Assembly (NCBI GenBank): GCA_965649825.1
Contig: OZ287698.1
Span: 945,949 to 1,009,948, forward strand
Length of the DNA stretch: 64,000 nucleotides
Source: Penicillus capitatus
Lineage: Eukaryota; Plantae; Chlorophyta
Direction of reading: 5' to 3'
Of the stretch, positions 12,980 through 59,173 are shown piece after piece. Each line of letters begins with the position of its first letter. The stretch's first letter is position 1. The notes beneath the pieces are model-generated. The model saw nothing but the letters and a program-made list of their open reading frames with translations. It searched no databases and was not told the origin of the DNA. The position numbers and the translations under genes were made by a program.

Positions 12980-14718
12980 ATGAGATTGCCGAGAACGACA
13001 CGGTGCGTCGCTTTTTGGCACCTCGAGGCAACCGAAGGATCGATGGTACGTTTTTTAGAATGCGACCCCGAATCGATCGCAATCGAAGGACGCTCCGAAA
13101 CAATCGCAATCGAAGGACGCTTCGAATCGATCACAATCGAAAAACACCTCGAAACAATCGCAATCGAAGGAGGGCGCGCTAGAGAAAGGAGAGCAGAATT
13201 CCACACGCAATCGTCGACTCTCTGTCGTTTCGTCAGAAGCAGAGGTCGTACGGTTCAGGATGCACTTAACAAGAGGTGCCGATTGCAGGAGACGGCGCAA
13301 GAGACAGACGTTGAGACGACGACATCATCAAGAACGGATCTTATTCCTGTAGACATCACTCCGCCACTCCATGTTCGGCGAATGTCGCGTTCATCGAACA
13401 ACAAATCAAGAGTACCTTCTGCTTGAGGATGTTCCTGGCGACATTCGGCGATAAACGTGTGCAGATACCCTTCGTTTCCGACGTTAGCTGTCTGTCACAG
13501 ACGGGACAGGAACCCGGATTCAAGAAAACGAATCAAGACAATTGCCTTGCATTCGAGAAATTCTTGCGCCACGGGCAATCCCTCTATGCCGTTTTCGACG
13601 GCCATGGGTCCAACGGCAGGTTCATCGGCATCCCTTTCGCTATTCGAAGCGGTTGAATGGTAGGACACAAGGTGTCTTCGTTTGTGAAGCATCAATTGGC
13701 TCTGACCCTGTCGCAACGACTGACACATCGACTGATAAAAGAATCCACTCAGGCGGATGTCGAACAGACCATGCGCGATGTATTCGTCAGTGTACATGAG
13801 AGTGTCACTATGCAATCGATCAACACCGAATTCAGCGGCACCACAGCAACCGTCGCACTGACCCTCGTACGCTTATCGAAGCATAATCACGGCTGCTCTA
13901 TCCGTCTGATGTCGGTGTCAGGGAATGAAGTTGTATGTCGCATGGGTCGGAGATTCGAGATGTGTGATCGGCATCAAGGGACAGAACGATCGGCTCATCG
14001 CAAAGGATGTCACGCGCGATCACAAACCTGATATCGCGGAAGAGCGTCGGCGCATCGTTGCCAATGGAGGACGCGTAGCACGGTGACCATTCAGCCGCTT
14101 TTCGATATGGGTCGTGATCGCGATCTCAGAATGAAAGACGAGCGCGGCGATGAGTTTGGGCCATATCGCGTGTTTCGCATATTCCCATGGTAAGCTCGTC
14201 GAGTTGAGCTCATCGGGCGCCCCGTAATTGGCTACCTTACTAGGGAACCTGGTTTGGCGATGAGTCGTGCCATTGGCGATCTCTGTGCCCATCAGTGAGT
14301 CCTTCATGCATCATTTCTGCGCCATAGCGTTCTTTATTTATCAATGTCTCAGTCTGTGTGTGCACTAGAGTCGGCGTCAGTTGCGAACCGGAGGTGAGTG
14401 TGACTGAGATCACTCAAGATGTCGCATCTATTATCGTGGCGAGCGACGGCGTCTGGGAATTCGTATCGAGTCAGGAAGCGATTGATATCGTCCACAGTGC
14501 CGAGAACGCGACAACCGCCTGTCGACAAGTAACAATCGCTGTACACGGCGTTTGGCACATGTCTGATGACGTTATAGCTGATCGATGAGGCATACCATCG
14601 ATGGTTGGTGGAAGAGAACGGCGTTGTGGACGATATTACCGCTGTCGTCGTGCGCTTCGATCACGCCGTATCTGATAACGAAGATCTAGAAACGATCACA
14701 AATGATGAAACGTCATAG
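12980..14718 (+). CDS. Protein phosphatase 2C (PPM family); start uncertain
   Basis: Motifs KTNQD, VFDGHGSN^GHKVS, SGTTAT, VGDSR, DHKP, PGLAMSRAIGD, IIVASDGVWEF and VDDITAVVV. About seven introns, one of them GC-AG. Confidence 0.9.
13068..13170. repeat. Imperfect 27-bp tandem repeat, about 4 copies (AATCGCAATCGAAGGACGCTcCGAAAC-like)
   Basis: Seen directly; it translates as xIAIEGRxE repeats. Confidence 0.75.
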
Positions 14719-14732
14719 ACGCGATTGTTAAT

Positions 14733-15762
14733 CTAAAGCGACGGTGCATGCATTTGAGCGATCGGGAGATGATAGACGTCGCCATGCCAGTAACGTCGGC
14801 GGACGTGTTTCCAGATCTCATCGTTGTTCGCATTCAACGGCAACGACACGAACTGCGTCGTCAGACCCAAGATCGACAAATCGTCCTTCACGATCTCACA
14901 GTAGACGCGATGAAAGAAAGCATTGTCGGGAGCCAGTCCATTGAAGAACGAGTAGAGACCATCTGGCTTAAGCAGACGAGGAAGGTGACGGTGGAAGTCC
15001 TGCAGGTCGCTATAGTGTTCTCCGTATGTATCGAAAAACACGGCGTCGAACCCTGAGAGGTCTTCGATGATATCTTGCCATCTTCCGTAGAGTACACGCA
15101 CGCCGGGACATCGATCCCATCCTTCATCGACCATTTTGGCGTGGATCTGAGGGTGTGCTTCGATGATGGTGTGCGATCTTGGCTGTCTTCTTTGGATGGC
15201 AGCATCGACTAAACCCATTCCGAAACCCACATTCAGGACATCCCCATCGCGAACGCAGAGTGCCTCAGCGTGGGCCTCCATCAGTGGCATCTCCCACTGC
15301 ATCATAACGGCATCGCCTTTGGCATCGAGGATGCAGGATGTCCCGAATTCGACGTCTTGTTTAAGAAAGGTATCCTCGGCAGAGGTATCGCGATCTGTCT
15401 GACGTTCTAAGGCATTGAGAATGCGTTCGGCCCGGCATCCGGCTGATAACAATGCCCGGATCACATTCTCGTGTCCAGCAGCTTCGGCGTAGTCGCCCGC
15501 ACAACGTCCATTCTTGTCTAACGCATTCCACGGTACGCCGATGGAGAGTAGCCATTCCACGACACGTAACTGTCCAGCATGGCTCGCAACCTACGAGACG
15601 CGTGGCGTTATCGCGAGAAGACAGATGCGACGACACGATGAGAGTGTTTTGTCCGTCTTCGTTGTACCAAAAGGGATCGGCGCCGTCATCGACCAGACGC
15701 TGAGCGCCTTCCGTATCTCCGACCTCACAACGATGTAGTAGACGTCGATGCAGATCTTCCAT
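14733..15762 (-). CDS. RMT2: Protein arginine N-methyltransferase 2 (Rmt2 type: ankyrin repeats plus SAM-MTase domain)
   Basis: Ankyrin-like N-terminus with GVPWNALD, then VMMQWEMPLM, VLNVGFGMG, IIEAHP, FFDTYGEHY and YSFFNGL. One intron. Confidence 0.9.
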
Positions 15763-15859
15763 TATTCACATTGCAACGGGGAAGGCGATACCAAATGACA
15801 CAAAAGAATCTCAAAAGATTGCCAAAATGTCACACTCTGTATCACACAAGTGCAATTTC

Positions 15860-16241
15860 TCATAACTTAATGGTGCCATCTTCCGCCAGAGATTCCGCTC
15901 TTAGTAGTATGAAACCGACAGCAATGCCCACCATAACGCACGCAGCAGAAATCGCAGCAGCTCCCCAGATCAGCCCCACATCTGCTTCAGCGATCTGTGC
16001 GATCTCCATGAAATTTGTCGACTGCAGCGCCGTCGCCTTCTTCGACGCTGGCCTCGGAGATTTGCTGAGCTGACGGAACTGTGCCGCTGCATCTCTTCTG
16101 TTTAGAAACCCTTTTCACGAAATGATAGGTACAGGTGCTTAACCTGGTCGAGGTCGTTCGTCGGAGCCCCGCGAAAGTACCCAATCCTGCCACAGGCTTA
16201 TGTGAAACAGCAGCGCCAGTTCGTGTGCACATCGAGGTCAT
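15860..16241 (-). CDS. petM: Cytochrome b6f subunit PetM precursor (nucleus-encoded)
   Basis: Ser/Thr/Arg-rich transit peptide, a 46-nt intron, then MEIAQIAEADVGLIWGAAAISAACVMVGIAVGFILLRAESLAEDGTIKL. The GFxLLRxES tail is characteristic of PetM. Confidence 0.8.
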
Positions 16242-16449
16242 GATGAGGACGCTGCGCAGAAATGCAAAACGAGAGAACCAGGACAGTGCAAGCAGAGCGA
16301 ACGAACGTACAAACAACGCAGAAGCAATCGGCCAAAATGCGATCGGATGTCTCATCGACGATCCATTCGCATCGGCGGCGGCTCTCTGACATTCGTCGAA
16401 GGTCGGTGCGTCTGAGGCTCCTTGGTCGTCTCGAGCGTGCTTTATTCGG

Positions 16450-17674
16450 ATGTCGCATCGCAAGTTTGAACATCCGCGTTGCGGTTCTCTCGGTTTTCTG
16501 CCCAAGAAGCGTTGCCGTCGAGGAAAAGGCAAGATCAAAGCTTTCCCCAAAGACGATCCCTCAAAGCCATGTCATCTGACGGGATTCATTGGATACAAGG
16601 CGGGAATGACCCATATTGTCCGCGAAGTCGATCGTGTGGGATCCAAACTGCACAAGAAAGAGACATGTGAAAGTGTGACGCTCATTGAGTGTCCACCCAT
16701 GATCGTAGTCGGCGTCGTGGGTTACATCAAAACGGCTCATGGACTGAAAAGCAAGTATACCACATGGACAAAGCACATCAGCCCCAGTTTTAAGCGGAAG
16801 TACTATCGCAAATGGTATCGATCGAAGAAGAAAGCGTTCACGCATTTTTCTAAGAATATGTACAAAGATGGAGATGGTCTGGTGATCAATGTCTTGGAAA
16901 AAATGAAGGAAGAGTGTGCTATCATCCGCGTCATTGCTCACACTCAGATCGAACGGACCCCTCTAAAACAGAAGAGGGCACATGCAATGGAGATTCAGGT
17001 ATACGTGAGATCAGGTGTCTCATAGTGGAACGCGTGGTGATGCAAAGGTGAATGGAGGAACAGTGGCCGACAAAGTGAAGTTTGCGCACGGTCTGTTCGA
17101 GAAGGAAGTGCCGATCGATGCCATCTTTAATTCTGGAGAAATGATCGATTGCATTTCCGTCAGCAAGGGACGTGGTCGAGAAGGTGTGATCACACGTTGG
17201 GGAGTCACACGTTTGCCACGGAAGACGCATCGTGGTTTGCGTAAAGTGGCTTGTATCGGAGCGTGGCATCCAGCCCGTGTGTCTTGGACCGTAGCAAGGG
17301 CTGGACAGAATGGCTTTCATCACAGAACGCAGATGAACAACAAGATCTTCAAAATCGGAAAGAAAGGGACCGATTCTCACAAAGGAACGACCGAGTTTGA
17401 TGTGACTAAGAAAGAGATCACACCGATGGGCGGCTTTGTGCGCTACGGCATTCTCCGAGAGGATTACATTATGATTAAGGGGGACGTCGTGGGGCCAAAG
17501 AAACGACCGATCACTTTGAGAAAGAGTCTTTTTGCGCAGACCTCCCGCAAAGCGGAGGAGGAGATCAGTCTGAAGTTCATCGATACTTCGTCCAAAATGG
17601 GACACGGTCGTTTCCAGACGAGCGAAGAGAAGCTGAAATTTTTGGGAAAATTCAAAGAGAAGGCGGCTGCTTAA
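16450..17674 (+). CDS. RPL3: 60S ribosomal protein L3 (uL3)
   Basis: [21 protein letters not shown] through [13 protein letters not shown]. One intron at MEIQ^VNGG. Confidence 0.98.
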
Positions 17675-17990
17675 GGCATCACCATGATAACCGAATGTTC
17701 GATGTTATGCGCTTCGGTTTCATCACACGAATCGTTCTCGGATGTTCCGAACCGTCGCGGCGTTGCGCATCGAGACACGTGGGACCCGACAGATGCACTG
17801 TGTGTTTTGTTTCTCGCTATCAGCTGTGCTCTGCGACAAAGCTGTGCATACCCAAGAGACGCCGGATCCATAACGCTCTTCCACTCTCTGTACTTCTGGA
17901 TCTAAGCACTTCTGCGTTGTCGTCGTCATCTCCATCGTTCCTCTTGTTCGGAAGACGTGTCGTCTGTGTCACGATTGTTCTCTCGTGCCG

Positions 17991-19972
17991 ATGCCGGACG
18001 CTGAAAAATCGGTCCGTGAAGACACGGCCCCTGCTGTTCGGCCAAAACCTGAAAGGACGTCGACTGAAATGCGCAAAACACAAGACTATGGATCTGTGCC
18101 TGACTCGGCAAGCATCCCACGAATTGGCGCCTTCTATCCTGGACATGGGTTTTCGACGCCTGTTCCACCCGAAGCGGTTCTCTGCCAACCAGGCAATGGA
18201 CGAGACAATCAGTCTTCTGATCATGAATTCGTTGTGCTCTAGGAATGAATCCTTTCGTTTCTTATGCGCCACACGCTGCGCACAATGCGTTGTATGGACA
18301 GTCGAGTCTAGGGCCATATGGAATGCTCTATCCGGGGCCATCGTATGATGTCTCCATCGCCCTTGCGGCTTTGGCGGTTGGCGAAGCCCGCGCTCTTTTG
18401 CAATCGACACAAGAATTTCGCACCGCGCAGTCCATGGCGTCGATGCCTTCGCCATCGACGGGCGAGAATGTGACAACGACCTCTGCACGCGAACGAGACA
18501 CTGAGACATCGCAATCAGGAACGTGGAAACGACGCCCACCGTTGACGAAATCGCGAAGCGATGTGCCGACATGGCGAAAGGACGGAAAGATACCAATCGC
18601 CAGAACCAGCACCGTACCGCGTTCCGTCGACTCCCTTGCTTTCCTCGATAAATTCAAAACCACCCGTGGACGCGGGTGTACTCTCAAGGCACCTCTTCCA
18701 ACCACCCTCATCCATGTTTCGAAACCGAAAGATCTGTCGCAGGATATCAAGGGCAATGTCGCGCTTGTGGGTTTGGATCAGATGGGAAGTCGTTGGCTTC
18801 AGAGTCAGTTAGACGATACACGTTTGTCCGGTGCCAAGGTGATCGTGGGAGAAGTTCTTGAAAGCACTCTGCTTCTCAGTCGCGATGTCTTCGGCAACTA
18901 CATTGTTCAGAAGACGTTGGAATATGTCGACCAAGAGAACAAGGACGCCATCGGTCGTGCAGTAAAGGGACGTATGCGACGTCTTTCTTTCGATGTAGAC
19001 AAGTCACGCGCTACACTGTTCCTATGAAAAGGGTTTAGGTTTACGGATGTCGTGTAGCCCAGCGTCTCATTGAGCATACAAGCACGACGCTGGCTGTGGA
19101 ATTGGCACGTGAGCTCGGCGACGTCGTGCAGAACTGCGTCGTCGATACCAATGCGAGTCATGTCATTCAGAAGTGCATTCAATTTCTGCCGTCCGATCAG
19201 ATTCGATGTCTCTTCGATCCGCTCGTAGCGAATGTGCGTAGACAATGAGATGTCTCATCCTGATGACTAGGATTCTGTGCTGCAGATAAGGTCCATTGCC
19301 AAAAACGCTTCCGGTTGTCGGATTGTCCAGCGATTGATCGAGTACTGCTCTCTGAAGGACATCCGCGGGAAGGCGTTGAACGAAGTAATCGATGCGTTGA
19401 CCGATTTGGCGACGTCCGAATACGGGAACTACGTCGTTCAGCACGTCGCGCAGCATGGAGGTCCGCAGCATCGTTCCAAGGTATCGCCAATGAATGATGT
19501 GACTGGTGAATGCCGCAGCCCTGTGATCTAGGCGATGCATCGCATCGGCACCAACTTCAGAATCTTCTCGCATCACCGCTACGCTTCCCGCGTCGTCGAA
19601 CGGTTTCTCACGGTTGTCAACGCCAACGAGAAGCGATACATCATTGAGAGCATGTTTATGATCGGCGACGATGGCTTCATCGAGGAATCGTGGGTGCTCG
19701 ACATGATGTTAGATCCATTTGGCAACTACATCGTCCAGAAGATTCTCGAAGTGCGATTGCCCAATCATCATCAACGATTGTCGGCGATTGTTGCATAGGT
19801 TGCAGAAGACGACATTAGAGTGCTGTTAGCCAATGTTATTAAGGCCAACAAGAGAGCTCTGTTGGATAATGGCTACGGTAAGAAGGTCGCCGATTCAGCA
19901 GTCAACATGGGACTGCTCTCTGCATCTGAACTCCGATCGCACGGACCAGCGACTGAAAAGGAAGAAGAATGA
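17991..19972 (+). CDS. Pumilio/PUF RNA-binding protein with 8 repeats
   Basis: Repeat cores GSRWLQ, GNYIVQ, GCRVAQ, ASHVIQ, GCRIVQ, GNYVVQ, ASRVVE and GNYIVQ. The first exon joins through an inferred GC-AG intron at 18193-18242. Confidence 0.9.
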
Positions 19973-20457
19973 TGATAATGCGATCTGAGTCTCTGGCTTC
20001 GGCTGTCGATAAAATGATCAATGCATCATCGACTGTAACATGGTCGTGTGTTGCTCCTAATCGAAACGAACGTCATCTCGTCGAGAACAGCATCATACGA
20101 CGAGTGCATGCATGTGCGTCATCACCCTGAACGTTGAGTTGAGCGTCATCGATGGCTTCGATGACGGACGGGATATCTGCAACCGTCATTCGTGTTATCT
20201 TCGCAATGAGATGAAGAAGCAGTCCAGAGATAAATGTCAGTGAGACGCCGACTCGCGATATCTTCTATCCACCGTTCACCTTGGAATCCGCTGAGTTCTC
20301 GTCATTCAAAAGAAATCAGTGAAAACGACGTCCGCTATCAAAGCAGAACGCATATCGTGTCGCCACGTGAAGTTGCGAAGAAGTAAATTTCCGTACACAG
20401 ATTTGTTTGCACCGTCTCCATACTTTACTCTCTATACTGCAGCGTGGTCAATTTCCC

Positions 20458-33762: not shown

Positions 33763-34604
33763 ATGTCGCGCGTTCGACAAGACTACGACCAGCTTATCAA
33801 ACTCCTGCTTATCGGCGACAGCGGTGCGTTTCTGCCGCGTGCTTTGAGTCTCCTGGAGCACTTGGCCTTCAGGCGTGGGCAAGAGCTGTTTGCTATTGCG
33901 ATTCTCAGATGGTACTTTCACGGACAGCTTCATCACAACCATAGGGTCAAGCATAACTTCCTCGACGATTCTTTCATGACGTACCGTTCATTCAGAATCG
34001 ATTTTAAGATCAAGAACCTCCACATCGACAACAAGTGGATTCGTATGCAAATTTGGGACACGGCTGGGCAAGAACGATTTCGAACTATCACGAGTGGTGT
34101 GTCATTGTCACACATGTCACATCACGTGTGTCACTCTTTCTTCATGTAGCCTACTATAGAAATGCCATGGGGATTCTGTTGGTATATGATGTCACAGACG
34201 AGGGTTCATTCAAGAATGTTCGAAACTGGATGCAGAACATCAAAGAACACGCCTCAGAGAAAGTGAACAAAGCAAGGATGGCCGTTTTCTGCCGTCCACG
34301 TCCCAGATGCATTGTGGCATAGGTTCTCATTGGCAACAAGTGTGACATCAAGAACGAGCGTGCCGTTTCCTATGGAGATGGACAAGCCTTAGCCCATGAA
34401 TTTGGGATACCTTTTATCGAAAGCAGTGCCAAAACCGGAGAGAATGTGGCAGAGATCTTTATGCAGATTTCGAGATCGGTGCTTCAAAGACTGGAAGAAG
34501 AGAAGAAACCCGAAAAATCCTCAACGAGTGCAACCAATGCTATTATAGGATCTGGACAGCTGGAGGATTTTTCTCCTAAACCCCGCGATGGAAGCTGTTG
34601 CTGA
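33763..34604 (+). CDS. RAB8: Rab8/RabE small GTPase
   Basis: Motifs [14 protein letters not shown]^GVGKS, TTIG^[29 protein letters not shown] and a C-terminal CC. Four introns, the fourth GC-AG. Confidence 0.95.
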
Positions 34605-35565: not shown

Positions 35566-38562
35566 TTATCTTCTGTCCCTCTGATTTATCCAGTGGTCTT
35601 TGAGAAGTTCGAATCGAGAGACAGCTCCGTCACCTGAAGGGAAAGAACGTGTGAGGGCCTCCATTTCCGCTTCGCTGTCAGAATCAAAGTTCGTATCCAT
35701 CTCCGTATCGGATTCCATAATCTCGTGCTTTGTCTCGAATGGAGGCTCTTGGAGCTGCATGCTCCATCCGGACGCCGATTCGTGTGTCTCTTTCAATCTG
35801 GCTGTTAAACTGCGCAGGACATCCGGATTGACCGGATCTGGTGCGAACTCATCTGGTTGAAATTTTTCCAAAAGAATGCACATAGAATGAATGGACAGGG
35901 CTGCAAAGAGTTCTCCTCGCACTGAGGCATCTGTCAGGAGCTCTTTTGGCATCATCAGCAGATCAGCTGTAGCTTTGAGTGAGGGGAAGAACGACTGTCC
36001 TGGATCTCCGGTATGATGCGGCTCTTTCATATTGGATTCAATGGCCCACTCCGACCATCGCGTGACCGCCATCTTCAAATGCATACCAACGCCAAATGTC
36101 AAGGGTCCTTTTTTGAAGGGCAGAGCAGTTGGATGGATTTTGGGCCACGTCCGATGCTGAGATCCGACCAGATCTTCCTGAAAACTATCAACGGCGTCGA
36201 AAAATAGCTCTCCCTTTGCTGCACTCGAAAGCAGCTCCCGAAACAGCAGAGCGTCCATCATGCGACAGCAATTGCCAATTATTTTTCTCCTGAGTAGCGG
36301 GAGATGTCCAAGTTCAACATCTCCACGACCAGCCGGCAATGCAAATTGGTCATGGACAGCACACAAGGCGCTCAGCCATTTCTGTACACTGCCTTCGTGA
36401 TAAGAAGACGGTTTGGCTTCAAAGGCAGGAGAAGCAATGTGCGGAACAAAGATCTTCCACCAGAGATACTGTTGTAGACGATCAAAGATGCTTTTCTCCA
36501 TTTTGACAATCAACTGGTGCATCCTCCTTGCGGACCAGTCGGATGGATCTGGACTAGAAGGCCGTGATCGACCACGGTCTTCGCCGTGGGAAAGGAATAG
36601 GCGAAGTTGAAAACAGTTTCCCCACCAAAAAGACATCCCTGGAACATCTGCCCCACAAGATTCGACCATGACGCGAATTGCTTGGAGGCAATTCTGAAGG
36701 ACAGCAACACACTCTTCACCACCTCCACTTTCCAATAGACATGTAATCCCCCTCGCGATTCGACGAGCTGGAGCATGAACGTTACGGGCTGAGTACTTCT
36801 GTGGACCTGCAAGCATGTCATCGGCACAAATGAGTGACGATCAGGGATGGTTGAATGGTGGGTTGCTCACCGGGGCGTGCCAAATAGACAGAGTATTCTA
36901 AAAAAGCAGCAGTTCTGAGTTCAGTCATGAGAAACGACGAAGGTCCTTCAAATTGAGGTGGGGATTTTCTTGGAGAAATAGATCGTTCGGGTGTCAACAG
37001 GTGATCCTGAAAGGGGTGCATTCGTGGCGATGGACTTCTTCTTGGAGATTGTGAGATGGCATCGGCATCGAATGCAGGAGCCGTACGTTTCCAGCGTCTC
37101 TCGGCCGTGGCCTTATACGCCTTTCCAGGGATTCCACTTGTCGGGAGCTTCGGTACTTGTGGAAAGACATCGACATTTTCCTTCCTGCGTTTGTCATCTT
37201 GAACATCGGTCTTGTTTCCACCGAAGAGTTCAACCGAAGAGAGAATGTCATCCGATGCGCCATCGGTCAAAGGTTCCTCCCCCGGAGATCCACTGGACAG
37301 CGATTCTCGATCGTCTTCGACGCTCTGTTGAGGCGTGGCTTCGATGATACCAGCCGCCGGTTCTGTTTTGGACTCGGGGATTGGAGAGACATCGGGTGTC
37401 TTTGGTGCTTGACAAATGAGACCGTCCGTAGGGCTTTCGGGTACCACTCCCATCTCTAGCCCAGACAGCCACTCGCCCGTGCGATCTTGACCTTCTGCTG
37501 TGTCAGAGAGCGCGGTCGGCGAATCACTGAAGCGGAAATCCGGACTCTTGGTTTCGGACTCACGACTCGTCTGCCGTTCATGATTCTTCAGTTTGGCTTC
37601 GCTCAGCTGAGACAAACGCCGTTCCGCCATTGGATCATCGTACTGCTTCTCTACACATCCACAACAATCAGACGGCGCTTACAGGCTCTCCCATCCTGAC
37701 AACTGACTGACTGACCTGCAGTTGGACTGGGAACAAAGTCCTCGACGACGAATCCATTCGAGTCCTGTGTTCGGATGTGCCCTGAGCCATGAGATGTGCG
37801 TCGATGGGGTCGAACAGGCATGTCGTGGTCGCTCTCTCTAATAGTCTTCAGTCGATCAAATCCACGCAGATCGTCAAGCTGTTCCCCCGTCATCCGAACA
37901 GGAATGTCTTCGTTCTCAGCACCGCGGATATAGGCACTGAAGTTTGTCACAAATGTCCCGCCTGTTCGATCGGAGCTCATGGAACTCGCCATGCTCGCCG
38001 GACCTCCCGTGCTTTTCCACATGCATTTGACAGTCATTTGTAGGACAGGTTCACCCACGGCAGCCACAATATTCCGGCCGCATGCAACAGGGAAATCTTT
38101 TTTGACTTCGTTTTGCAGAGCTGCGAATTCTGAGAGATCAATGACAACACGCCCCAATGCGCTCGTGTCTCTTCCATTGGGCCCTGCATTCTCTATCACT
38201 GCTAGAATAAGGCATTTCTTTTTGAATGGTCCACTCGGCGTAGGGGCAGCGTTGTCTTCCTAAACCGAGGGAGGGTGTCGATGAAACGCGCTGAGATATC
38301 GACGACGGTATGGTCAAACCATATAGAGAGTGGCCGAGATTTGAATGACGTCATTGAATTCGATGACCGTTCCCAATTGCCCTTGAACTTGTTTAGGTCG
38401 GTGCGCTTCGGTCACGCCGCGCTTCTTCTTCTTTGAGCCTCGCTGCCAGGCTACGGCTATCGATTTGCCACTGGCAGGCCAAGGTGACAACACATGAAGA
38501 GTAAAGGAAAAACTGAAGCGCACGGCACTGGACCGTTTTCTCAATGCGTCTAATAGCCCCAT
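35566..38562 (-). CDS. NT-C2 (EEIG1/EHBP1-type) domain protein with a conserved plant-type C-terminal domain
   Basis: N-terminus VRFSFSFTLHVLSPWP..IAVAWQRGSKK and LGRVVIDLSEFA. C-terminal region has SFWWGNCFQLR, LTFGVGMHLKM and FQPDEFAPDPV. Confidence 0.8.
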
Positions 38563-41696: not shown

Positions 41697-44600
41697 ATGG
41701 GTGCTGAAAACGTCACATCACGCTTACCCGTTACGACAGACGCTATGCATTCGAGCTCTCAAGGCGATGGACGATACAAAGAGTATACGCAGCTCGCCGA
41801 GCCACACGTTGCGTCATTTGATTATTTCGTCCGAGAAGGTCTGACGCGCGTCGTCAAAAGTGTGAAACCGGTCGAGGTTCGATCACCCGACCGACCTCAG
41901 AGAGTGGACATTCGGACACTGGGACTCAGGTTCAGCATCCTGTGACGGAGAAGATCTATCGGATGACCATTTCGAATCCCGTTTTCGGGAAACCGATACA
42001 TCCCTTGGCGAAAGATGGTGGTGCGATCTATCCCCGAGAGTGTCGTGAAATGGTCGATCTCCTTTGTCAACCCTCTCATCCACTAATCACTCTTCCTGCT
42101 GCACAGAAACTCACTTATGCGGCGCCGTTGCACGTGGACGTGGTGATCAATCGCATTCGTGTGACGGTTGGGTAGGTGAACCACGGCGCCATGGATCTCC
42201 CTATTGAGTGCATCGCTTGCTCTCTGGCAGACTGGGCAATTGGCCGATTATGGTACAGAGTGCGTTGTGTCATCTGCACGGTAAATCAAAAGATGAGCTC
42301 TATCAAAGAGGAGAGGAAGCCAACGACTTCGGCGGATACTTCGTTGTCGGCGGATTGGACAAACTCATTCGCATGCTCTTTACTCAAGTCCCTCCAGTAT
42401 CTCACAGTATCGTAGCTCAGAGTTCTGTTTGCTGCAGCGGCGGCATTATATCATGGCCCTAGATCGATCGAATTATCTCAAGAACGGCCCTCTGTTTACC
42501 TCCAAAGCAACCGTCATTCGGTCACACCTTTTGCTTCAGTGACAGTTCAGAGAAAAGAACTGCAGGTGTGTGAGCGATGATGAAAGAGGCAGTTTTCTTC
42601 GCTGCCATTACCTACGAGATGACACCGTCGTCGTCGGTTTGATCATCGGCAGTTTTAACTTCTTCCTCCCAGCCGGTGTACTGCTCAGAGCACTGAGTGA
42701 GGTTCTGTCCATTTCGCCCTGTGGTTTTCGCACCTGGTGTCCCAGGCAAACGATCGCGAGCTGTACGATCACCTAACAGCTGCCTGTCCGAGTGGTGAAG
42801 GTGTAGCCCATGCTATCTTTGTTGGCCAGCAGGCAGAGCAGTGTCTCTCTCAATTGCTAAAGTACGGACTCAAAACCCAGCACGAAGCAATCGAGTTTTT
42901 GGGAGGCTACTATCGTTCGCCGATGGGATGCGCGGCATCGATGTCGGACTACGATGTGGGGATGGAGCTTCTGCACGAGTACATCTTCTGCCATCTCTCT
43001 TCCTTGCAGCAAAAGTTCCATCTTCTGATCCAGATGATCCACAAGCTCTATGCTTTTGTAATGGGCCCATGCAAGATGCTTCTGCCAACATCTGTGTGTG
43101 ATTCTGAACAGTGCAATTCGCAATGTCAAGCAGACAATCCTGACTCTTTGGCAACCCAAGAGGCGATGTTACCTGGCTTCATTTTGATGAAAGTGGCACA
43201 CGATCTTTTCGGACAGTATCTGAGATTCATACAATCCTCCATTCTTAAACAGTGGAAGCGTTCCCCTGAAAAGACAGATCTTGAGGTGTCTTCCTCCTAA
43301 GCACACGAGCTTGATGTGGTGATGTAGGATGCCGAGTGTGTGTCCAAGATTCTGCGCAGCAGGATTTCAACGGAGATTGGGAACAGGCTCATCTCTATGC
43401 TTAAGACGGGGAGGTTTGTTTCACGCACTGTTCGAGATCTTCCTCAATCCACTGGATTAACAGTGAGGCCTTTAAAGTGGCATCCAGAATGTGTGTCCTT
43501 CTGTGAAGGTGACGGCGGATCGCATCAATTTCCTGCGCTATCTTGCGCATTTCAGAGCCATACATAAGGGCGCCGTCTTCACACAGATGAAAACAACTCA
43601 GCCGCGAAAACTCTTGCCAGATGCATGGGGATTCGTGTGTCCTGTCCACACACCAGATGGACCGCCTTGTGGATTGCTCTTGCATCTGACAGGCAGCTGC
43701 CGTATAACAGTCAATAAACCAAGAAACTACGATGCCCTTTACCTCAGCATCTGCAAGGTGATTAGAAAGATACGCATCTGAGAAACGGTCTGTCTATTCT
43801 TAGGTTCTGGCAAAACATGGAATGGTGTCCATCATGGCCAATGTGCATCCACCTCCTCTGTCGACATACGTCAAGGCAATGGTCGATGGACGAGTTGCCG
43901 GTTACATCTCTGCCTCTCTGCTCGAACCATTGGTCAACAGGTGTTCACTAAATCGCGAGAATTTCGCAGAGATAGCCTCTTGTTCCAGATTGCGATTCCT
44001 AAAGGCTGTAAACGATGCAGGAGAGGCACACAGGATCGCGGAGCTTGATACAGACGAACAGCAGATTCCATCGGACTTGGAGATTGGATACATTCCTCAT
44101 TTCGAAGGTGGGATGTTTCCAGGCCTCTATCTCTTCACCCTGGGTGGCCGCCTGATCCGGGAAGTCCGACAAATTACCAGTGGCATGTCGGAGTGGATCG
44201 GACCTCTTGAGCAGCAGCATCTGATGATCCAAGTTCCAGATGACAGTATCAAAGAAACTAAATCTGATGCCTCTCATCAAGAGATCCACACAAAGAACAT
44301 CCTCAGCATCTTGGCCTCGCTGACTCCGTTCTCTGAGTTTAATCAAAGTCCGAGAAACATGTATCAATGTCAGATGGCAAAACAGACTATGGGTACGCCC
44401 TGTTTGGACTTTCAGTTTCGGCCAGACAACAAACTATACAGGTCAGCCCCTCACCGTAAGAAGTGTTCTGCTCATCTCTGCAGGTGTGTCTAGGCTACAG
44501 ACACCTCAGAGTCCGATTTGCAGAACGCAGCGTTATAGAGAGTATCATCTGGACGAGTATCCTGCGGGAACAAATGCCGTTGTCGCTGTCATTTCGTTTA

Positions 44601-46326: not shown

Positions 46327-47040
46327 CGATGAACGCGATCGGCGCCAATCGATCTCATCGAGCCACGTCACAATCGCCTGCTCCCTTATTCTCCAACGAT
46401 GACGAAGTTTAATCGACGTCATCAGAGGCCGATCGACCGCGCTCACACAGAAGAAGCTGCCAAGAAGCTTTCAACGAAACCAGATCTGGAAGAGATAAGG
46501 ATTCCACACGGTTTCATTTTCTAAAACTCGCTGACTGATTTTGCATCCCTTTCGTATCTAAACGTCTTCAATAGAGCCATGTCTGCTCGATTAAGATTGT
46601 TTCGAATGTCGATCGGTTGACGACAATCGATTTGCGTTGTCATAAGCAGTCGACTCTCAGAGAGAAAGATCTGCGTCGTTCGCGTTTTATGAAGATTAAT
46701 ACACAACTAGTCGGATCGAATTCGATAACAGTAAACAAGGACTCGATGGAGTTTGATTTCGACGCATCGATGAATCTACTTAACGAATCGTTCATCGAAA
46801 CTGCTGCGACGAGCGACAGGAAAAGCTGTCCTGGATCATCAATGATATGTAACACTATTCAGAAAGCGATCGTAACGACAGGCGTCACTGTTGACAACAT
46901 AACCGACAGCTGGTCCTTGGCAGGCCGCGGACGATAATGATCGATGGCTGTTGCGTACGATCAGACACGATGGAGCCTCTAAAAAGCAGGAACATTTTGA
47001 TCGGTGCCTATCGCTCCCCAAACAAGACCCGATCCCCCGA
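46327..47040. repeat. Dispersed repeat, copy B (homologous to 29914-30620)
   Basis: See copy A. Homology ends where the minisatellite begins. Confidence 0.9.
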
Positions 47041-47546
47041 TCCCCCGGGACCCGACCCCGATCCCCCGGGACCCGACCGACCCCGATCCCCCGGGACCCG
47101 ACCGACCCCGATCCCCGGGACCCGACCGACCCCGATCCCCGGGACCCGACCGACCCCGATCCCCGGGACCCGACCGACCCCGATCCCCGGGACCCGACCG
47201 ACCCCGATCCCCGGGACCCGACCGACCCCGATCCCCGGGACCCGACCGACCCCGATCCCCGGGACCCGACCGACCCCGATCCCCGGGACCCGACCGACCC
47301 CGATCCCCGGGACCCGACCGACCCCGATCCCCGGGACCCGACCGACCCCGATCCCCGGGACCCGACCGACCCCGATCCCCGGGACCCGACCGACCCCGAT
47401 CCCCGGGACCCGACCGACCCCGATCCCCGGGACCCGACCGACCCCGATCCCCGGGACCCGACCGACCCCGATCCCCGGGACCCGACCGACCCCGATCCCC
47501 GGGACCCGACCGACCCCGATCCCCGGGACCCGACCGACCCCGATCC
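47027..47546. repeat. 24-bp GC-rich minisatellite (GATCCCCGGGACCCGACCGACCCC), about 21 copies
   Basis: About 18 identical units preceded by about 3 variant units. There are no spacers. Confidence 0.97.
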
Positions 47547-51605: not shown

Positions 51606-53564
51606 ATGGACGTGGACAACAGCATCGAAGGCGCCGATGCCCTGGGGCGTTTGTTGCCAAATGGTAAATCACCTCTGCTTTGCGCGTTGACGAGGTCAGC
51701 GTCGTCGTCGTTTTCAGGTTGCCCGACAGTGCGACGCGATGCCGAACGTGGAGGACGCGTCTGGGAATTGCCCGGAACGCAACAGGACCCGCAATTCATC
51801 AATAAACGCATCGAGAATGCACGCCAGCCATTCACCATTTTCGAAATCATTCGCGACCAGCAACAGTCACTCACGGGGGCCAATTTGACAACGGCTTTTG
51901 TCAAGCTGGCACAATTGACGACGGTTGAGAATGTGAAACATGTTTTGAAATCGCACAGAATCTTCAAAGGTGTATCATTTCTTGTCACTGGCGGTTACCC
52001 TCTCTGAACACACGATAACAGAGATGACCCTGACCGCTGCTCAAAATGCACGGCTGTTTTCGGACGAGGAGCTTGTGAAGATCCTCTGGGCGTTGGCGCA
52101 TTTGGACGCTGAACCGCCAGTCGAAGTGATGGATACATTCATGTGCAATTTTTACACAAGGATGGACAAAGTGGATACCAAAGCATGCATCTGGAATCCC
52201 ATGTCCTCATGACTGAACCGGCCATGTGTGGTTATTTAGGTGCTCTCATTGGCCCTGTGGGGACTGGCACGTCTGGATTACATACCTGCTGAGAAAGTGC
52301 TGATTCGAGCCTGTCAGTCCATGGCAGAACGACTGCGATTGCGAGAGGGACGACTGTCAGATTTCACAACCTGTTTCTGGGCACTCGCTGTTATGGGCTA
52401 CTGTCCCACCTCCACCATTCTCCACGACTTCGTCACGTTGAGCTGTTCGTGTTTGGGATCACTAACGCCGATGGAAGTCGCTCAGATGCTTTGGAGTTTC
52501 ATCCAGTTTGGCGTTAACCCTGGCCAGACTTTCCTCAACGTGGTGGATGCACTCTTCTGCGGAGCCGAGTGCATGTGGAACATCGAGGAGACGTCCTTTC
52601 TCTTCTGGGGTATGGCAACGTATGCCTATCCGCTCAGTCAACTCTTCATCTTCAAGACGATCGAACGCATCCATGCCTCGCTGTCGGAGCTCTCCTGGTC
52701 GGTTCTGGTTCGTACCCTGAATGCCTGCGCAAGGTCAGGCGTCGATCACAGCGATGGCGGCGGTCAGTCTGATTTGTGAACAGGACGTGCTATCATCCAG
52801 GAGAGATGTTTCTGCAAGAGGCAGCTGGGTTTCTCTCGTCAGTGGTGGACGATATCTACTACGAAGCCATCGAGACCATTCTCTGGTCCTATGCCACGTT
52901 CTCATTCCATCCTGGATGCGATCTCCTTGGCAAACTGACGTCCAAGATCAACGGACAGCTGCGTTGTTTCAGCGCCCTGCATCTGGCAAATATTCTCTGG
53001 TGCTATGCACTGTTCGATTCCTGCACCCTTAGCATCTGGAACACGATTCTCGATGCGTTCAGCGCCTTTCCTGTCGCAGAAGTGTCGCCGGAGGCCCTTT
53101 ATCGTCTCTTCCAAGCGTATTTGCTTAAATCGCGGTGCACTGAAGATCGCTTTGAGCTACCCAGAGATCTTCAAGAGGCAGGAATGCAGCTCTGGAAGCA
53201 CCAAGTGGAGCATCAGAAAACGATTGCCTCTCCTTTTCATGCCGACGTCCTGCGCATCTTGAGTTCCTTTCATCTGCACTCTCAGATCTTTCAGCATTAC
53301 TGTTGTGCAAATCAGACGCTCTGTGTCTCCTTCTATATCGAATCTCTTCAGAGAGGGATCGAACTCATCGATGAGCACGAATTTACGATGAACACGACAG
53401 AGCCCATCGGATCGGCCATCATGCGAACGAAAGTGACCCAGACATTGTTCCCGGAAGCATTGGGATCGTCATCTACGGTGGAGTTTTTGAAATTTACTTT
53501 TTGGCAGTCCCTCCAGACGGATGGCGAGAAGCAAGAGCACCTCAGACGTATCTTGACGATTTAA
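51606..53564 (+). CDS. Helical-repeat (OPR/FASTK-like) organellar RNA-binding protein with a probable RAP domain; start uncertain
   Basis: Repeated motifs such as ELVKILWALAHL, VLSLALWGLARL, EVAQMLWSFIQF and HLANILWCYALF, plus a C-terminal RAP-like segment (GIELIDEHEF). Confidence 0.75.
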
Positions 53565-53724
53565 GCCATTACTTAAATTAATGCCAGTGTCAGCGAGTTC
53601 GCGATGATGTGCTTTGCTGGTTTGACTGGTTGGTCTTTCTGATTGCGTCTCATGGCCTTGTTACGTCAATAGCGACCTTCAATTTCTCATTCTCTTCTTC
53701 TATTTGTACCTCTCGTTGCGCAAA

Positions 53725-54520
53725 ATGCCAACGTCAAGTGTGGGAGGCCCGTTGCCGACAGAAGCGCGGCAAGGTCGACACAAACAAAAATATGGACAGA
53801 GCGGGGAGCGCCTATTGGCTGGGCAAGTGTTCTCCCATCTTCTGTGCTTCTCTTTACGGTGTCGCTTGACGCAGATGCATTCCGTTTCGTATGACGGACG
53901 AGAAGGACGGTAAGAATGAGGTTGAGGTGCTGCTCGTGACACGTCGGAACGGAATGGGTTGGGTTCTTCCCAAAGTGCGGGAGTCGATGTGAATCGCCGC
54001 GTTGTCGACGAGAGGGTATGTTCGTTCGGCTGACAGGGCGGATGGGAAAGCGACGAAGACAATGTAGAATCAGCGGCACTCAGAGAAACGGTGGAAGAAG
54101 CCGGTGTACGTGGCCATCTAGATGGTCCAATGCTCGGCGTTTTTGGATTTCGCAGCAAGAAACGGCGACATTACCCAGACATGAGCATGTGTCTAGCCCA
54201 TGTCTTCGCCATGCGCGTCATCGAGCAGCTCGATTCGTGGCCAGAACAAACTTTCCGCAAAAGAAAATGGGTATCCCTCGCTCAGTCCTTATGACATTGC
54301 GGTGAATGAAGGCGCTCTGCTTCCCTGTGTTCAGTTCTCTGTCGTGGATGCCTACAATCAGTGCATTGATGAATGGATGCGAGAGGCCTTTCGCGCTTGG
54401 ATCCAGCGCAATAACTGGCCGTTGTTGATCACAAATGGAACAGATCTCGCGGGTCATACCCTAGATGAAGATAAAACCAAGCAAATGTCGGAGACCACCA
54501 CCACCACTGCTTTAAACTAG
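53725..54520 (+). CDS. Nudix hydrolase (DIPP / plant NUDT12-18-like)
   Basis: Sequence ARQGRHKQKY..RLLAG^CIPFR, WVLPK^GGWESDED...AALRETVEEAGV (Nudix box) and WPEQTFRKRKW. Confidence 0.9.
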
Positions 54521-54784
54521 ATAGCGTCTTCTCATTATAGACTGTTTTGTACGGAAATGGAAGTGGGAATTTATAATGCCAGCCACAGAAAAGAGCAAAC
54601 AAGTGCGTATCGACGAAGTCTTTGCGCGACGTCATCCTTAATACGTTCGCTTTTCTCATGACCCTTTTGACGATTCTTTAAAGTGGCCGACAGGAGTGCG
54701 AGAAAGAGCGAAACAACGGGACTTCTTACAAGTGTTGATGATCATCGTTCTGCCATTTAAGCAGCACATAACACAGATACCTAG

Positions 54785-55524
54785 TCACTGTTGTCTGGCA
54801 ACTATCTGTTCGACCCTTCGACTGCGAGTTGACTGTTTCTGAGCCCATTTGGCATGACGCACAATTTCCTCACTCTAAACCCATACCTCTATTCTCGTGC
54901 TCATGATCAGAGATCTCACACACTCACTTGCAGTAGCTTTTCAAGTGTATTGTATTCCATGGCCAGTTGTTTTTCGGTGTAGAATCGATGGACGGCTCGA
55001 TGACAGAGCGAACAGATATTTACTGTTTGGCACAGCTGTTCTCTATCATACCCTCGCTTTCGTAATCTTCCATGCATTGTCCGCGGAATGAGATGGTGCT
55101 TCGTCAACGGCAGACATCGCTCACAGATTTCACACGCTCCCGGTTGGAGATATTCTTCTTCCTCTTCCCCTTCGTCTCTCTCTTCGTTTTGCATCACCTC
55201 GAAGAGCTTGGTACAGAAATCTTGAGCATCGTCGGCATCGATCCTTTCCGAATTGGCAAGGATATCTTCGAAGCGATCGATGGAGGATTGGACGGACGTG
55301 GGTCGACCATTGGTGACCAAATCGTCGCAGACCGCTTCGACGATATACTGCGCTATCGGGTCCTTATCCGACCGTCCCACTGTCCGACGCCAGACGGAAA
55401 GGACTATCCGATTACAGTGCTCTTCGTTCGTTTCTTTCTCCATTGACACGACTATCGACCGAATGCATTCGAGGATGATTAAAAGCGCATCGTCGGTTGG
55501 ATGTTGGATACCCTGTCGTTTCAT
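54785..55524 (-). CDS. HNH-nuclease-like protein
   Basis: Motif CEICERCLPLTKHHLIPR...NICSLCHRAVH. One intron, then SEEIVRHAKWAQKQ. Confidence 0.75.
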
Positions 55525-55653
55525 ATCGACTGCTCGCGGTCCATTATCGCGTAGCCGTACGAAACGCATGCATTTAGATGATGAATATCATCTCATGACG
55601 CGTATTAGATTGTTACATGCATGCATGTATGTGTGCATAGAGACATGGACACA

Positions 55654-56949
55654 TCATTCATCTTTCGTTGGAGAATCGATGAATTGTCTAACGGATGTCC
55701 AGTACGGGACGGAACAATCATCGTACGCACTCATGTGGCCGGCACCTGGGAAGGACTGAAAGGTTGAATGAGGAGATTTGCACAGGGACCGCAGTTTCCG
55801 CATGTGCTCTGGCGGGACGATTTCATCCTAAACGCACCATTGGCTTCATATGTCACATCATGGTCATCAAGAAAGCGAGGCCTGCTCGGAAGAGAGAAAG
55901 AGAATGGGTGTCCTGGTGATCTTCTGAATCGCTTCTTTGTTATTCCACTTGTTGCGTAGCAGCAGATAGGAAGCACTAGCGCAAAAAGAGTGATTTGATG
56001 TGACGTTTGACAGGATGGTACAGTTTGAGTCGGAAGAGGTGTCTGAGAAAAGGGAGGATGCACGGCACCATGTCTGCGATGCATGTAAAGGTATTCTCCA
56101 CAATCAATCCAGCAAACTAAAAAGAATGAGATCTCCGACAGAAGAGTGAGACTGACAGACTTTGTCTTGATGTTTAGAAACGAGGTCGATGGCAACGGCT
56201 CCTCCAAGAGAACGGCCGAAAACAAAGAGCTTAGAGGGATCAAAGTGCTCGTAGCCCAAGCAAAACTCCATTGCCGTCTCAGCATCGAGTTTCAGACCTT
56301 CCTCCGACGGAGATCCTTCACTGGGACCGTAACCACGATAGCTGACATATCGACAAGTGTTTTTTTGCGGATGGTATTTGAAAGAGAGACCTGATGGCGA
56401 CGATGGAGCAACTGAGTCTCGCAATCATGAGATAAAAAAGTGGGAGACGATGGGAGATGTTGCCAGCATTGGCCTGTATTGTCAGATTCCCATCACATTT
56501 CGTTGTGGGCAAATTGCATGAGACTTGGAAGAAGATGATGGTTGGACGCTGGTTCAACGTTTCGAGCGATCGGCAATGTTCCCATAGCAACCATCCATGC
56601 AATTTCTTGCCATCTCTTGTCTCCAACGATAGATCCTGACACACACAAACAATTCTCACACTTAAAGAGTGAGACAAATCGGACTCGGTAGTTAAGATGG
56701 GCTTGATTGGGAGAGCGTTCATATTCGTGTAACAATCCTGGGACATGCGGAACGTATAACTGCACAAACAAACAGCTTCACAGTGCGCGTCGTCGGCAGG
56801 CCACTATGCCATGTGGCCTTGGAAGAGATAGAGGAGTCCTAGGCCGAGTCCGGCGAGTCCACAGCCCTAATGCCCCATTCAGTTTCGCAGATGCGATCGA
56901 CTTATCGTCTTACGCCGTAAACGGTCGTCAATAACCATGCTGGAATCAT
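55654..56949 (-). CDS. ABHD13: Alpha/beta hydrolase, ABHD13/WAV2/BEM46 family
   Basis: Motifs LYLFQGHM^LYVP, IFFQ^ANAGNISHR, YRGYGPSEGSPSEEGL, GRSLGG (nucleophile), ENTFT, DEIVPPEHM and GAGH. Two GC-AG introns. Confidence 0.9.
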
Positions 56950-57131
56950 TGTGCTTTGCTCAAAAGCCGGTTTAGCGCCAGTGTTCCCGGTCGAATCTGG
57001 TCCAGTCACATCGCGAGGGAGGAGACATACGGCGACGGTTGGTCATCAGTCGCGCGTGCGCATCCATCCATTCTATCCGACAGCGTCTCTCTCCTATTGT
57101 TCGCACCTGTGGCTATCGATTTCGCGAAGAG

Positions 57132-59173
57132 ATGCTGAAACTCTTCAATGGACTCTTAGGACACCGAATTCGATCGTGTTTAGCCGTCGGCGACGGACAC
57201 GGCGATATCGAGCTCGCCATCGCCCCGTCGGTTGACGAATTTGGCGAAGTACTGGATGAATACCGTATCACACGTGAGGCACACGGCACCGTCTTTTCTC
57301 GACATTCATGTACTTTGTCTGTATATCCAGTCTCAGACAATGGCCGGCCCTTTACGCAAGAACACAAGGTGCGGAAGGGACCGCCGTCGTCTTTCGGTTT
57401 ATCGGAATGGCAATGCCTCTCTCCAGATGATCAAGTCGTTCGCAAGGTGCATCTTTGTGGATCAAAGTGTCGAGATTTTGAACAGAGGAGTGCATATCTA
57501 CACGACAGGTGAGCTCTTCCGCTGTTCACGACGTTCTATCGTCTCGGCGCCCGTGCAGTTGTCGACATCGGCGTGCAGCGTTGCTTGACAGTCAAGCGTC
57601 ATCCACGCAACGATCAGCTGCAGGTGATATCTACCCAGCAAACGGTGAAACGAAGAGATGCGCATGACACGCATCTGAGTTTCTGCTTGGCCAGCAAAGA
57701 TGCCGTCCTACACGGAGGTAAGTCACGTCTCTTAGCTAAAGAATCTCAAACAAGGGAATGGGCTTGATGGATTAGGAATGCCGTTTTCTGAGTTCTTTGA
57801 GATGTTGCACACATTGGTGACGTCTGTGCTGGTCTTGGCCCCCGGAGTCCGGATCACTTTGCGGATTGCCGGAGAAAAACTGGTGTACCTCTATAGAGCG
57901 CTGCCAGAATTGGGAAGAACAAAGAAGATGTGCTCGTTTCTTCATGTGTCCACAAAAGACGCCGGAAACTCGATTGACGTCTCCGTGGCATGGCGTGTTA
58001 CCATTGATCCACAGCAAAGGCATTTTCTCAAAGAAATGCTGTACCTGACGGTTCATGACACGTGGAAAGAAAGCAGAGATACACCCTGTCTTGCGGAATT
58101 GCCTGGTCTATTGGACAGTACGACCCTCATCGAAGCTCAGCAATACCATCCAGTACATCTACTGCGCTCCCGTGATGACGGAGATGGCGAACTGGATGCA
58201 TCTGGCTCGTGTATTGGTATCTGTCGGCACAAGAGTGACCGAGTATGGAAGCATGGCCCTTTGCACGCGCTGTGTGGTATTGCCACGCATATTGAAAAAG
58301 GCAACCATTCTTGCCGTGTCCTGCTCTACGATCACCACGGAATCGTCGTCAAAGAAGGACCAATCGTGATGGCTGCTCTGCAAAAAGGCATGGATCGATC
58401 ACACATCGTTGGCACGAAACCTCGAGCTTTGTATGTGGTGAACAGTTCAGTGGGAGAACTTTGGCCTTGAGCTCACCAGGACAGAAACTGGCACTTCATC
58501 TTCACTCGAAACAAGCAATAGTGAATCTGTATTGTCCCCATTCCGAAGTGCTGTGTTTGTTAGACACGCTGTTTTTTTCTCCAACGACAGTCGAGAATCA
58601 AGACGCTGTTGGTCTTCACACCATCGTGCTTCACTTTTGGTTCGAAGGAATTTCGGGTAATGAGCGCAGTGACTTCCTGCGGGGTCGAATGAGGCTGTCG
58701 TTGCAGATGTCCCTGTCCTGTTGCCCTTGCACGGTCTGAATGGCGTTGCGAAACGGGCAGTTGAAGGCGCTTTGCTCAATATTCGTCGGCAGGAACGTGA
58801 TCGATGGAAGGGCAAAGTGGAGGAGCGCATTCACACATCTATCCACTCTATCGGCCAGAGCATTTCCAACATCGTCCTGTAAGCAAAGAGAAGGCATAAA
58901 CGGCAACGCCGTCCACGATCCTTGCTGATACACAGGAGATGTCGACATCCATCCCTCCAGCAATACACTTGCGCATCTTTGAGATGCGATGGTCCCTCAC
59001 TGAACGAGATCTTGGCTCAGAAGATGCGAGCATCTGCAGATGGACTGTTGGATAAGAAATTCCATTTGCCCGATGGAGATGTCGATATACAGACACCGAC
59101 GATCTCGGCGTCATCGGCATCGGAGGGAATGGTGGTGATGGGGTACGATGACGATGAGGAATGGCGATTTTAA
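57132..59173 (+). CDS. MTOPVIB: Probable meiotic topoisomerase VI B-like subunit
   Basis: Colinear similarity, recalled from plant MTOPVIB, in the segments LKLFNGLLGHRIRSCLAVGD, CRVLLYD...MAALQK^VQWENFGL, KRAVEGALLNIR and SIGQSISNIVL..C..L...ILAQKM, plus an acidic tail. Some internal exon boundaries are uncertain. Confidence 0.65.

Follow-up and report, generated by a model that had tools for sequence, protein, structure and literature searches.

The window considered here is a stretch of 64,000 nucleotides of the green alga Penicillus capitatus (assembly GCA_965649825.1, contig OZ287698.1, forward-strand positions 945,949 to 1,009,948), a gene-dense segment of 50.8% G+C with roughly 25 genes, in which eight introns begin with GC and end with AG. 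The recognisable genes encode Aquarius, a thiolase, a PP2C phosphatase, ribosomal protein L3 (RPL3), Pumilio, a Rab1/Rab8-like GTPase and a DIL-domain protein, followed by the RNA polymerase I subunit RPA2, a FAST/OPR-like repeat protein, a DIPP-type Nudix hydrolase, ABHD13/BEM46, casein kinase 1 (CK1) and a short-chain dehydrogenase (SDR); in addition, a CBM20 gene was noted. The closest named protein matches for the window genes come from green algae with identities of 55% or less, and the searched protein collections hold the genes of this lineage only as unspliced open reading frame (ORF) fragments. When our four spliced gene models were looked up among about 15 billion collected proteins, neither an exact copy nor a close relative turned up for any of them, and no relative was found when ABHD13 was queried against the JGI metagenomes. 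A non-standard genetic code, as used by some ulvophytes, was considered and rejected, TAA, TAG and TGA each acting as a stop at expected C-termini. Caulerpa, Ostreobium and Bryopsis were likewise rejected as sources of the DNA on account of G+C, gene density and the absence of close matches.

An earlier note on this DNA had proposed GC donors at six introns, where conserved protein motifs seemed to require them (PP2C, Rab, Nudix, two in ABHD13 and one in an MTOPVIB-like gene), and had listed two more, in Pumilio and in the OPR/FAST-like gene, as likely. All eight intervals start with GC and end with AG on the coding strand, their coordinates being exact and their lengths 48–58 nt (Table 1), and five of them are clustered in a stretch of 6.3 kb (52183–58445), spread over four neighbouring genes. 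We rebuilt the gene models by hand and checked the introns by homology, reading frame and cross-species comparison, and taking the eight introns out gives back conserved proteins. The PP2C model was identified by the Pfam PP2C domain (E=2e-48). The Rab gene has four introns, and its spliced protein aligns with human Rab1A and Rab8A without gaps over residues 1–176 (PDB alignment), including ASEKVNK/VLIGNKCD across the GC junction, just as the Nudix junction RLLAG/CIPFR aligns gap-free with RLVAGCICL of yeast DDP1. The ABHD13 gene carries eight introns within 1.3 kb and could be aligned with 17 homologues without gaps; the invariant residues Y33, P35, P38 and G39 lie just past one of its GC junctions and the invariant D245 just past the other. 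In terms of frame and homology, PP2C and both ABHD13 sites are the strongest cases, and Pumilio and OPR rest on the comparison with a sister species.

The name MTOPVIB was given to the gene at 57100–59200 in the earlier note and was not confirmed: its 217-residue exon has no Pfam match, and a set of 1.84 billion representative proteins contains just 10 relatives, each an unnamed ORF from a metagenome.

Table 1. Introns and other features of the window (a slash marks the splice junction; positions are those of the window; L001 belongs to the sister species, L009 to an independent conspecific assembly and L002 to a more distant relative)
Feature	Position	Strand	Length (nt)	Donor	Junction, comparison or remark
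GC-AG intron, PP2C	13616..13663	+	48	acg/GCAGGT	phase 1, DGHGSN/GHKV
GC-AG intron, Pumilio N-terminal region	18193..18242	+	50	cag/GCAATG	
GC-AG intron, Rab1/Rab8-like	34272..34322	+	51	aaa/GCAAGG	phase 0, EKVNK/VLIGNK
GC-AG intron, OPR/FAST-like helical-repeat gene	52183..52239	+	57	aaa/GCATGC	
GC-AG intron, Nudix (DIPP-type)	53823..53874	+	52	tgg/GCAAGT	RLLAG/CIPFR
GC-AG intron, ABHD13/BEM46	55828..55881	-	54	cag/GCCTCG	LSSEQ/DEIVPP
GC-AG intron, ABHD13/BEM46	56760..56809	-	50	atg/GCATAG	FQGHM/LYVPHVPG
GC-AG intron, MTOPVIB-like	58388..58445	+	58	aag/GCATGG	phase 1, AALQK/VQWENFGLE
RPA2 intron 1	41877..41929	+		GTTCGA (T at +3)	L001 GTGCGA
RPA2 intron 2	42053..42106	+		GTCGAT (C at +3)	identical in L001 and L009
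RPA2 intron 4	42388..42437	+		GTCCCT	L001 GTCTCT
RPA2 intron 5	42521..42565	+		GTCACA	L001 GTCGCG
RPA2 intron 6	42702..42745	+		GTTCTG	L001 GTTCTG
RPA2 intron 9	43463..43508				AAG acceptor
RPA2 intron 10	43758..43803	+		GTGATT	L002 orthologue (8434–8475) has GC donor GCACGA
RPA2 intron 11	44442..44493	+		GTCAGC	L001 GTCAGC
ABHD13 intron 3	56636..56684	-		GTCCGA	sister species GTCTAT
ABHD13 intron 4	56474..56524	-		GTCTCA	17-homologue alignment and sister species
ABHD13 intron 5	56342..56390	-		GTCTCT	17-homologue alignment and sister species
ABHD13 intron 6	56117..56160	-		GTCTGT	17-homologue alignment and sister species
Rab intron 2	33946..33995	+		GTCAAG	ungapped Rab alignment; position common to L002
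Thiolase intron 3	9723..9774	+		GTCAAG	verified gene model
DIL-domain gene intron	38260..38319	-		GTTTGA	L001 GTTTGT
RPL3 intron	16999..17047				AAG acceptor
Nudix intron 3	54271..54334			GTATCCCT	start near a U12-type 5' end
Aquarius (intron-binding helicase)	4356..8484	-			single 3.5-kb intronless exon
Tandem array	47052..47546				24-nt unit, 20.5 copies, 99% matches

Related genomes were reached by a search with the C-terminal exon of RPA2, which yielded metagenome ORFs without annotation (96%, 74% and 72% identical), and the related loci were fetched starting from these matches together with cluster and representative look-ups. Three contigs (L009, L010 and L011 of ENA ERZ25074695) represent the same species as the window in an independent assembly; L009 is collinear with the window and 99.54% identical to it over 21.2 kb. 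The GC donors are identical in these contigs at PP2C, Pumilio, OPR, Nudix and the ABHD13 intron whose donor lies at 55881, and the intron as a whole is identical for PP2C (in L010 and L011) and for OPR, Nudix and ABHD13 55828–55881 (in L009), so that a T-to-C error of assembly is excluded at those sites. Four further contigs (L001, L004, L005 and L012 of ENA ERZ26696514) belong to a sister species with conserved gene order and about 86% nucleotide identity. There the GC donor is kept at all seven sites that could be reached (PP2C, Pumilio, OPR, Nudix, both in ABHD13 and MTOPVIB-like), and the interiors of these introns have accumulated substitutions and indels of 1–3 nt; for comparison, RPA2 is 87.9% identical between the window and the sister species in exons and 77.3% in introns. 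For instance, the acceptor of the PP2C intron changed from GGTAG to GCCAG (L012), the Nudix intron contains a 1-nt indel, and the two ABHD13 introns start with GCATCG, along with a 3-nt indel inside the intron, and with GCATAC at 55828–55881 and 56760–56809, respectively.

At larger distances the donor dinucleotide itself varies. The orthologue of the Rab GC intron in the more distant relative L002 lies at the identical position and starts with GTAAAT, and the MTOPVIB-like intron keeps its position and phase both in L006, where it starts with GTGCAT (56 nt), and in L008, where it starts with GCAAGA (43 nt). The reverse case is RPA2 intron 10, which has a GT donor in the window and a GC donor in L002, the sole candidate there and one of the 11 RPA2 introns of that relative. 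As judged from these alignments, GT and GC interchange at orthologous intron positions within the lineage, and the evidence of conservation spans at least five related genomes. The RPA2 introns of L002 (6500–9200) are even shorter (38–57 nt) at unchanged positions, and their donors are more canonical (GTGAGA, GTAAGA, GTAAGC), showing that the degeneracy of donors varies within the lineage.

Not only the GC donors but also the GT donors of the window depart from the usual consensus. The statistics were taken from 44 tabulated introns (38 with GT, the rest with GC), which together with the Pumilio and MTOPVIB-like introns make 46 verified introns in 12 genes. Among the 38 GT donors, position +3 is A in 14, G in 11, C in 10 and T in 3, so that the pyrimidines at +3 described in the earlier note were found in 13 of 38 (34%), and in RPA2 in 6 of 11 donors. 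What is left of a consensus is G at −1 in 22 (58%), A at +4 in 17 (45%) and G at +5 in 18 (47%), corresponding to 1–1.5 bits over the seven flanking positions by a hand estimate. The RPA2 introns were defined by comparison of the window with L002 and then compared with L001. Odd donors such as GTCGAT, GTCAGC, GTTCTG and GTCTCT are conserved in the sister species, indicating that they are functional sites and not errors. A candidate intron of the DIL-domain gene (37643–37707) was dropped, as neither its GT nor its AG was conserved in the sister species.

The introns are short and uniform (42–79 nt, median 52, n=44), with a G+C content of 50% and a base composition equal to that of the exons. 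Acceptors are YAG in 42 of 44, and a TGAY or CTnAY-like motif was seen by eye near the 3' end of about half of the introns. The AAG acceptors belong to the RPL3 intron and RPA2 intron 9 listed in Table 1, the latter reading GAAG in the sister species, and L002 likewise has AAG acceptors in Rab and RPA2.

Regarding the class of the GC-AG introns, their donors were compared with the GT donors in the flanking positions: A at +3 was found in 7 of 8 GC donors compared to 14 of 38 GT donors (hand Fisher p ~0.012), G at −1 in 6 of 8 compared to 22 of 38, and G at +5 in 5 of 8 compared to 18 of 38. Compensation by A at +3 is the usual pattern of GC-AG introns of the major spliceosome, whose donors pair with U1 and U6, and we therefore read these introns as ordinary U2-type introns. 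Taken together, the eight are probably genuine U2-type spliceosomal introns of a lineage that tolerates weak donors and has a GC share of roughly 7–13%. It is from genomic sequence that we infer their removal from RNA, the kind of spliceosome involved and why weak donors are tolerated. Recognition of the 5' splice site would keep its normal U1/U6 contacts and tolerate many mismatches, and donor, branch point and acceptor might be read together as one unit of about 50 nt (intron definition), so that single donor positions would be under little selection. The narrow length range fits such recognition across the intron. The GC donors are stable between sister species and exchange with GT at the same positions over longer times.

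Two other classes were tried and rejected. U12-type introns start with RTATCCTT and have a branch site TCCTTRAY at a distance of 10–20 nt from their 3' end. RTATCCTT is not matched by any of the eight donors, no RTATCCTY occurs at the eight sites, and with 8 occurrences of RTATCCTY in the window versus 4.1 ± 2.1 expected, U12-like donors are not enriched. Nudix intron 3 starts with GTATCCCT, near the U12-type 5' end, and contains TCCTTATGAC, but at about 40 nt from its 3' end this motif is farther away than a U12 branch site would lie. Introner-like repeats were likewise rejected, the aligned eight GC introns having only G1, C2 and the terminal AG in common.

How frequent GC-AG introns are depends on the total number of introns, for which only approximate values are available: about 90 according to the earlier note and 41–113 according to our ab initio runs. 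Codon bias is too weak for ab initio gene finding (GC3 ~0.54); the best recall of a self-trained Viterbi gene finder was 15 of 21 curated introns, so that it served only to bracket the intron total, and a decoy experiment in which the donor dinucleotide of the finder was swapped was without power. Its training was also distorted by the near-perfect 24-nt tandem array, which can be read without stops in several frames of both strands and would encode Gly/Ser/Arg-rich or Pro/Asp-rich peptides. Compared to a GC-AG share of about 1.2% in plant introns (PMC6310983), finding at least eight among 90–110 introns has P ~2e-5 to 7e-5 (hand Poisson), and the eight among roughly 60–110 introns of the window bear out the view that such introns are here several-fold above the usual level of about 1%. 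Among the verified introns the fraction was 8 of 46, in a sample biased toward the genes flagged beforehand.

Several points weigh against the reading of the eight as ordinary introns of a tolerant lineage with such an elevated share. The share of 7–13% has a denominator (roughly 60–110) that is only estimated, and the rate is based on one 64-kb window and small samples of relatives. In six genes that had not been flagged (thiolase, RPL3, CK1, SDR, RPA2 and the DIL-domain gene), 0 of 22 introns had a GC donor. Two of the GC donors, GCCTCG and GCATAG, have poor complementarity to U1. In addition, no strong branch-site or polypyrimidine signal was visible by eye in the verified introns, and hence the source of the missing recognition information is not explained by any strong branch signal. 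Finally, no annotated or transcript-derived protein of the lineage was present in the collections searched.

The 0 of 22 in unflagged genes would fit the window being a local outlier in a genome whose GC-AG share is about 1–2%, the cluster of five of the eight between 52 and 58.4 kb being due to chance or to selection in the scan, and the window was indeed chosen because of its GC-AG feature. We consider this unlikely in view of the low probability calculated above and of the further GC donors met in relatives, namely in one of 11 RPA2 introns of L002 and in L008.

The weak consensus, the 34% of pyrimidines at +3, the conservation of odd donors between species and the narrow distribution of intron lengths could also be taken as signs that 5' recognition itself is altered, by changes in the U1 5' end, U1C/LUC7 or U6/Prp8 or by a U1-independent route, so that the 5' code is cut down to G[T/C] and supplemented by an intron-length ruler of about 50 nt, the U1 snRNP (small nuclear ribonucleoprotein) is modified or dispensable, and GC is equivalent to GT. 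The red alga Cyanidioschyzon merolae has very few introns, and the genome studied here is, by contrast, intron-rich with weak sites. The reduced spliceosome of C. merolae, which lacks a U1 snRNP, serves as a precedent (PMC4829280, PMC10158995), at most a possible analogy for U1-less recognition of 5' splice sites. On the other hand, the residual −1G, +4A and +5G of the GT donors and the enrichment of +3A in the GC donors look as if pairing with U1 and U6 still counts, and we regard altered recognition as rather improbable. The relaxed 5' code proposed in the earlier note is upheld in part, insofar as there is little information beyond G[T/C] and intron lengths are narrow, and is limited by the same residual consensus and +3A enrichment. 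The reliance on the intron 3' end proposed along with it was not borne out, YAG being the only signal there. The canonical 5' end of U1 snRNA is ACUUACCUG; scanning the window and related loci totalling about 190 kb with Rfam found no snRNA gene there, be it U1, U6 or U5.

If the junctions had been mis-modelled, with nearby GT donors in use or the GC forms being minor isoforms, the GC-AG share would be ordinary. In-frame GT dinucleotides do lie near five of the donors, 9 nt upstream in Rab, 12 nt upstream in OPR and 6 nt downstream in Nudix, as well as in MTOPVIB-like and Pumilio, but each of them conflicts with other evidence, and for PP2C and the two ABHD13 introns no GT alternative is viable at all: in PP2C the sole GT-AG alternatives lose the DGHG metal-binding motif and the acceptor at 13663 always pairs with a GC donor, and in ABHD13 no in-frame GT is available for either intron. 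In Rab the upstream donor would delete VNK, and in Nudix the downstream one, the only close option, would add two residues, both gapping alignments that are otherwise ungapped. In OPR the LW motifs are spaced by 38, 40, 38 and 38 residues with the GC donor, and the upstream GT, which the earlier note had pointed out, would give a spacing of 34 and break the 38-residue period; moreover, the disputed 12 nt differ in L004 and L005, where the GC is kept, solely by a synonymous GAT/GAC change, as expected for coding sequence, and divergence jumps right after GCA. In the MTOPVIB-like gene the alternative GT of the window (58408) reads GC in L004 and L005, where the GC donor is kept, and the relatives share the intron position of the GC model. 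In Pumilio, proposed earlier from frame continuity, the sister species (L012) keeps the GC and has TGA in place of CGA four codons beyond it, ahead of the alternative GT donors of the window; in addition, the 50-nt interval is 16% diverged compared to 3.4% for the next 59 nt. Mis-modelling is thus very unlikely. That the C at +2 is an error of assembly or sequencing, T being read as C in introns that really are GT-AG, has a negligible chance, since the same C is present at six sites in the conspecific assembly and at seven sites in two sister-species contigs, which refutes it for seven of the eight sites (all but Rab 34272), and relatives have GC donors of their own (RPA2 intron 10 in L002, MTOPVIB-like in L008).

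Some further observations were made on the loci compared. Aquarius, an intron-binding helicase, is itself without introns over its 3.5-kb exon, whereas its neighbours have an intron every 100–200 nt. Gene order between the window and the sister species breaks at 46341–50413 of the window (L001 11092–14159, L004 1–2661); right after RPA2 and right before the CBM20 gene, the sister species carries an inverted segment homologous to 24.5–27.5 kb of the window. At L001 19167–19566 lies a truncated, non-syntenic Rab fragment consisting of exons 1–2 with an internal deletion followed by unrelated sequence, probably a pseudogene or a scar of rearrangement. L004 and L005 (ERZ26696514 ctg303794 and ctg303772), contigs of about 1 Mb, contain near-identical copies of one 20-kb locus; these may stem from haplotypes, from two different strains or from a large duplication. 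In ERZ25074695, the variant contig L011 at 5x coverage stands beside a contig at 42x.

Compared to known systems, the eight introns share with ordinary U2-type GC-AG introns the GC donor, the AG acceptor, the lean toward A at +3 (7/8), the interchange with GT and their unique sequences, but differ in a share of about 7–13% in this one window versus about 1%, in the far greater degeneracy of the accompanying GT donors, and in lengths of about 50 nt. Algal lineages with a substantial class of GC donors and a retained AG acceptor are already known, with GC-AG shares of 56% in Emiliania huxleyi (PMC4028052) and of 14–17% in Aureococcus and about 14% in Pelagomonas (bioRxiv 10.1101/2024.10.30.620910). 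The explanation given for the high shares in those algae is a G+C-rich genome, with 65% G+C in E. huxleyi (PMC4028052; bioRxiv 10.1101/2024.10.30.620910). Whereas G+C there is about 65% or more, it is 50.8% in the window and 50% in its introns, with a lower GC-AG share, so that the high-G+C explanation does not carry over.

Among green algae, the BOC1 introns of the Mamiellophyceae are similarly short (<75 nt) and numerous per gene, without clear signals beyond the terminal dinucleotides. In Micromonas, Ostreococcus and Bathycoccus these introns are rich in AT (<43% G+C), restricted to a single chromosome region of low GC content and, if non-canonical, have TG or CG acceptors (PMC3879977), whereas the introns described here have 50% G+C, are not regionally confined and have the GC donor as their non-canonical end. 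The lineage is also not mamiellophycean, close matches being absent and no mamiellophycean protein being found among the best 120 ABHD13 matches. The introner elements of Micromonas CCMP1545 provide another example of a green alga with many GC donors, 53% in IE-A1, where the introns are repeated copies with a fixed donor AG/GYGCGT (PMC3879977). In contrast, the eight GC introns of the window share nothing beyond GC...AG.

Higher GC-AG shares are already known in other algae; the present finding is clear in its consequence for annotation and of moderate interest for the evolution of splice sites. A gene finder restricted to GT donors would model seven genes of this window wrongly (PP2C, Pumilio, Rab, OPR, Nudix, ABHD13 and MTOPVIB-like), and annotation of these genomes must permit GC donors as well as very weak donor matrices. 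The enrichment of GC-AG introns is met here in DNA of about 51% G+C whose introns are ultra-short and whose donors are nearly free of information, and it is conserved between species. If only G[T/C] and intron length were in fact read, GC donors would be selectively equal to GT without a GC-rich composition. The lineage lends itself as a natural test of the amount of 5' splice-site information that the major spliceosome needs under intron definition.

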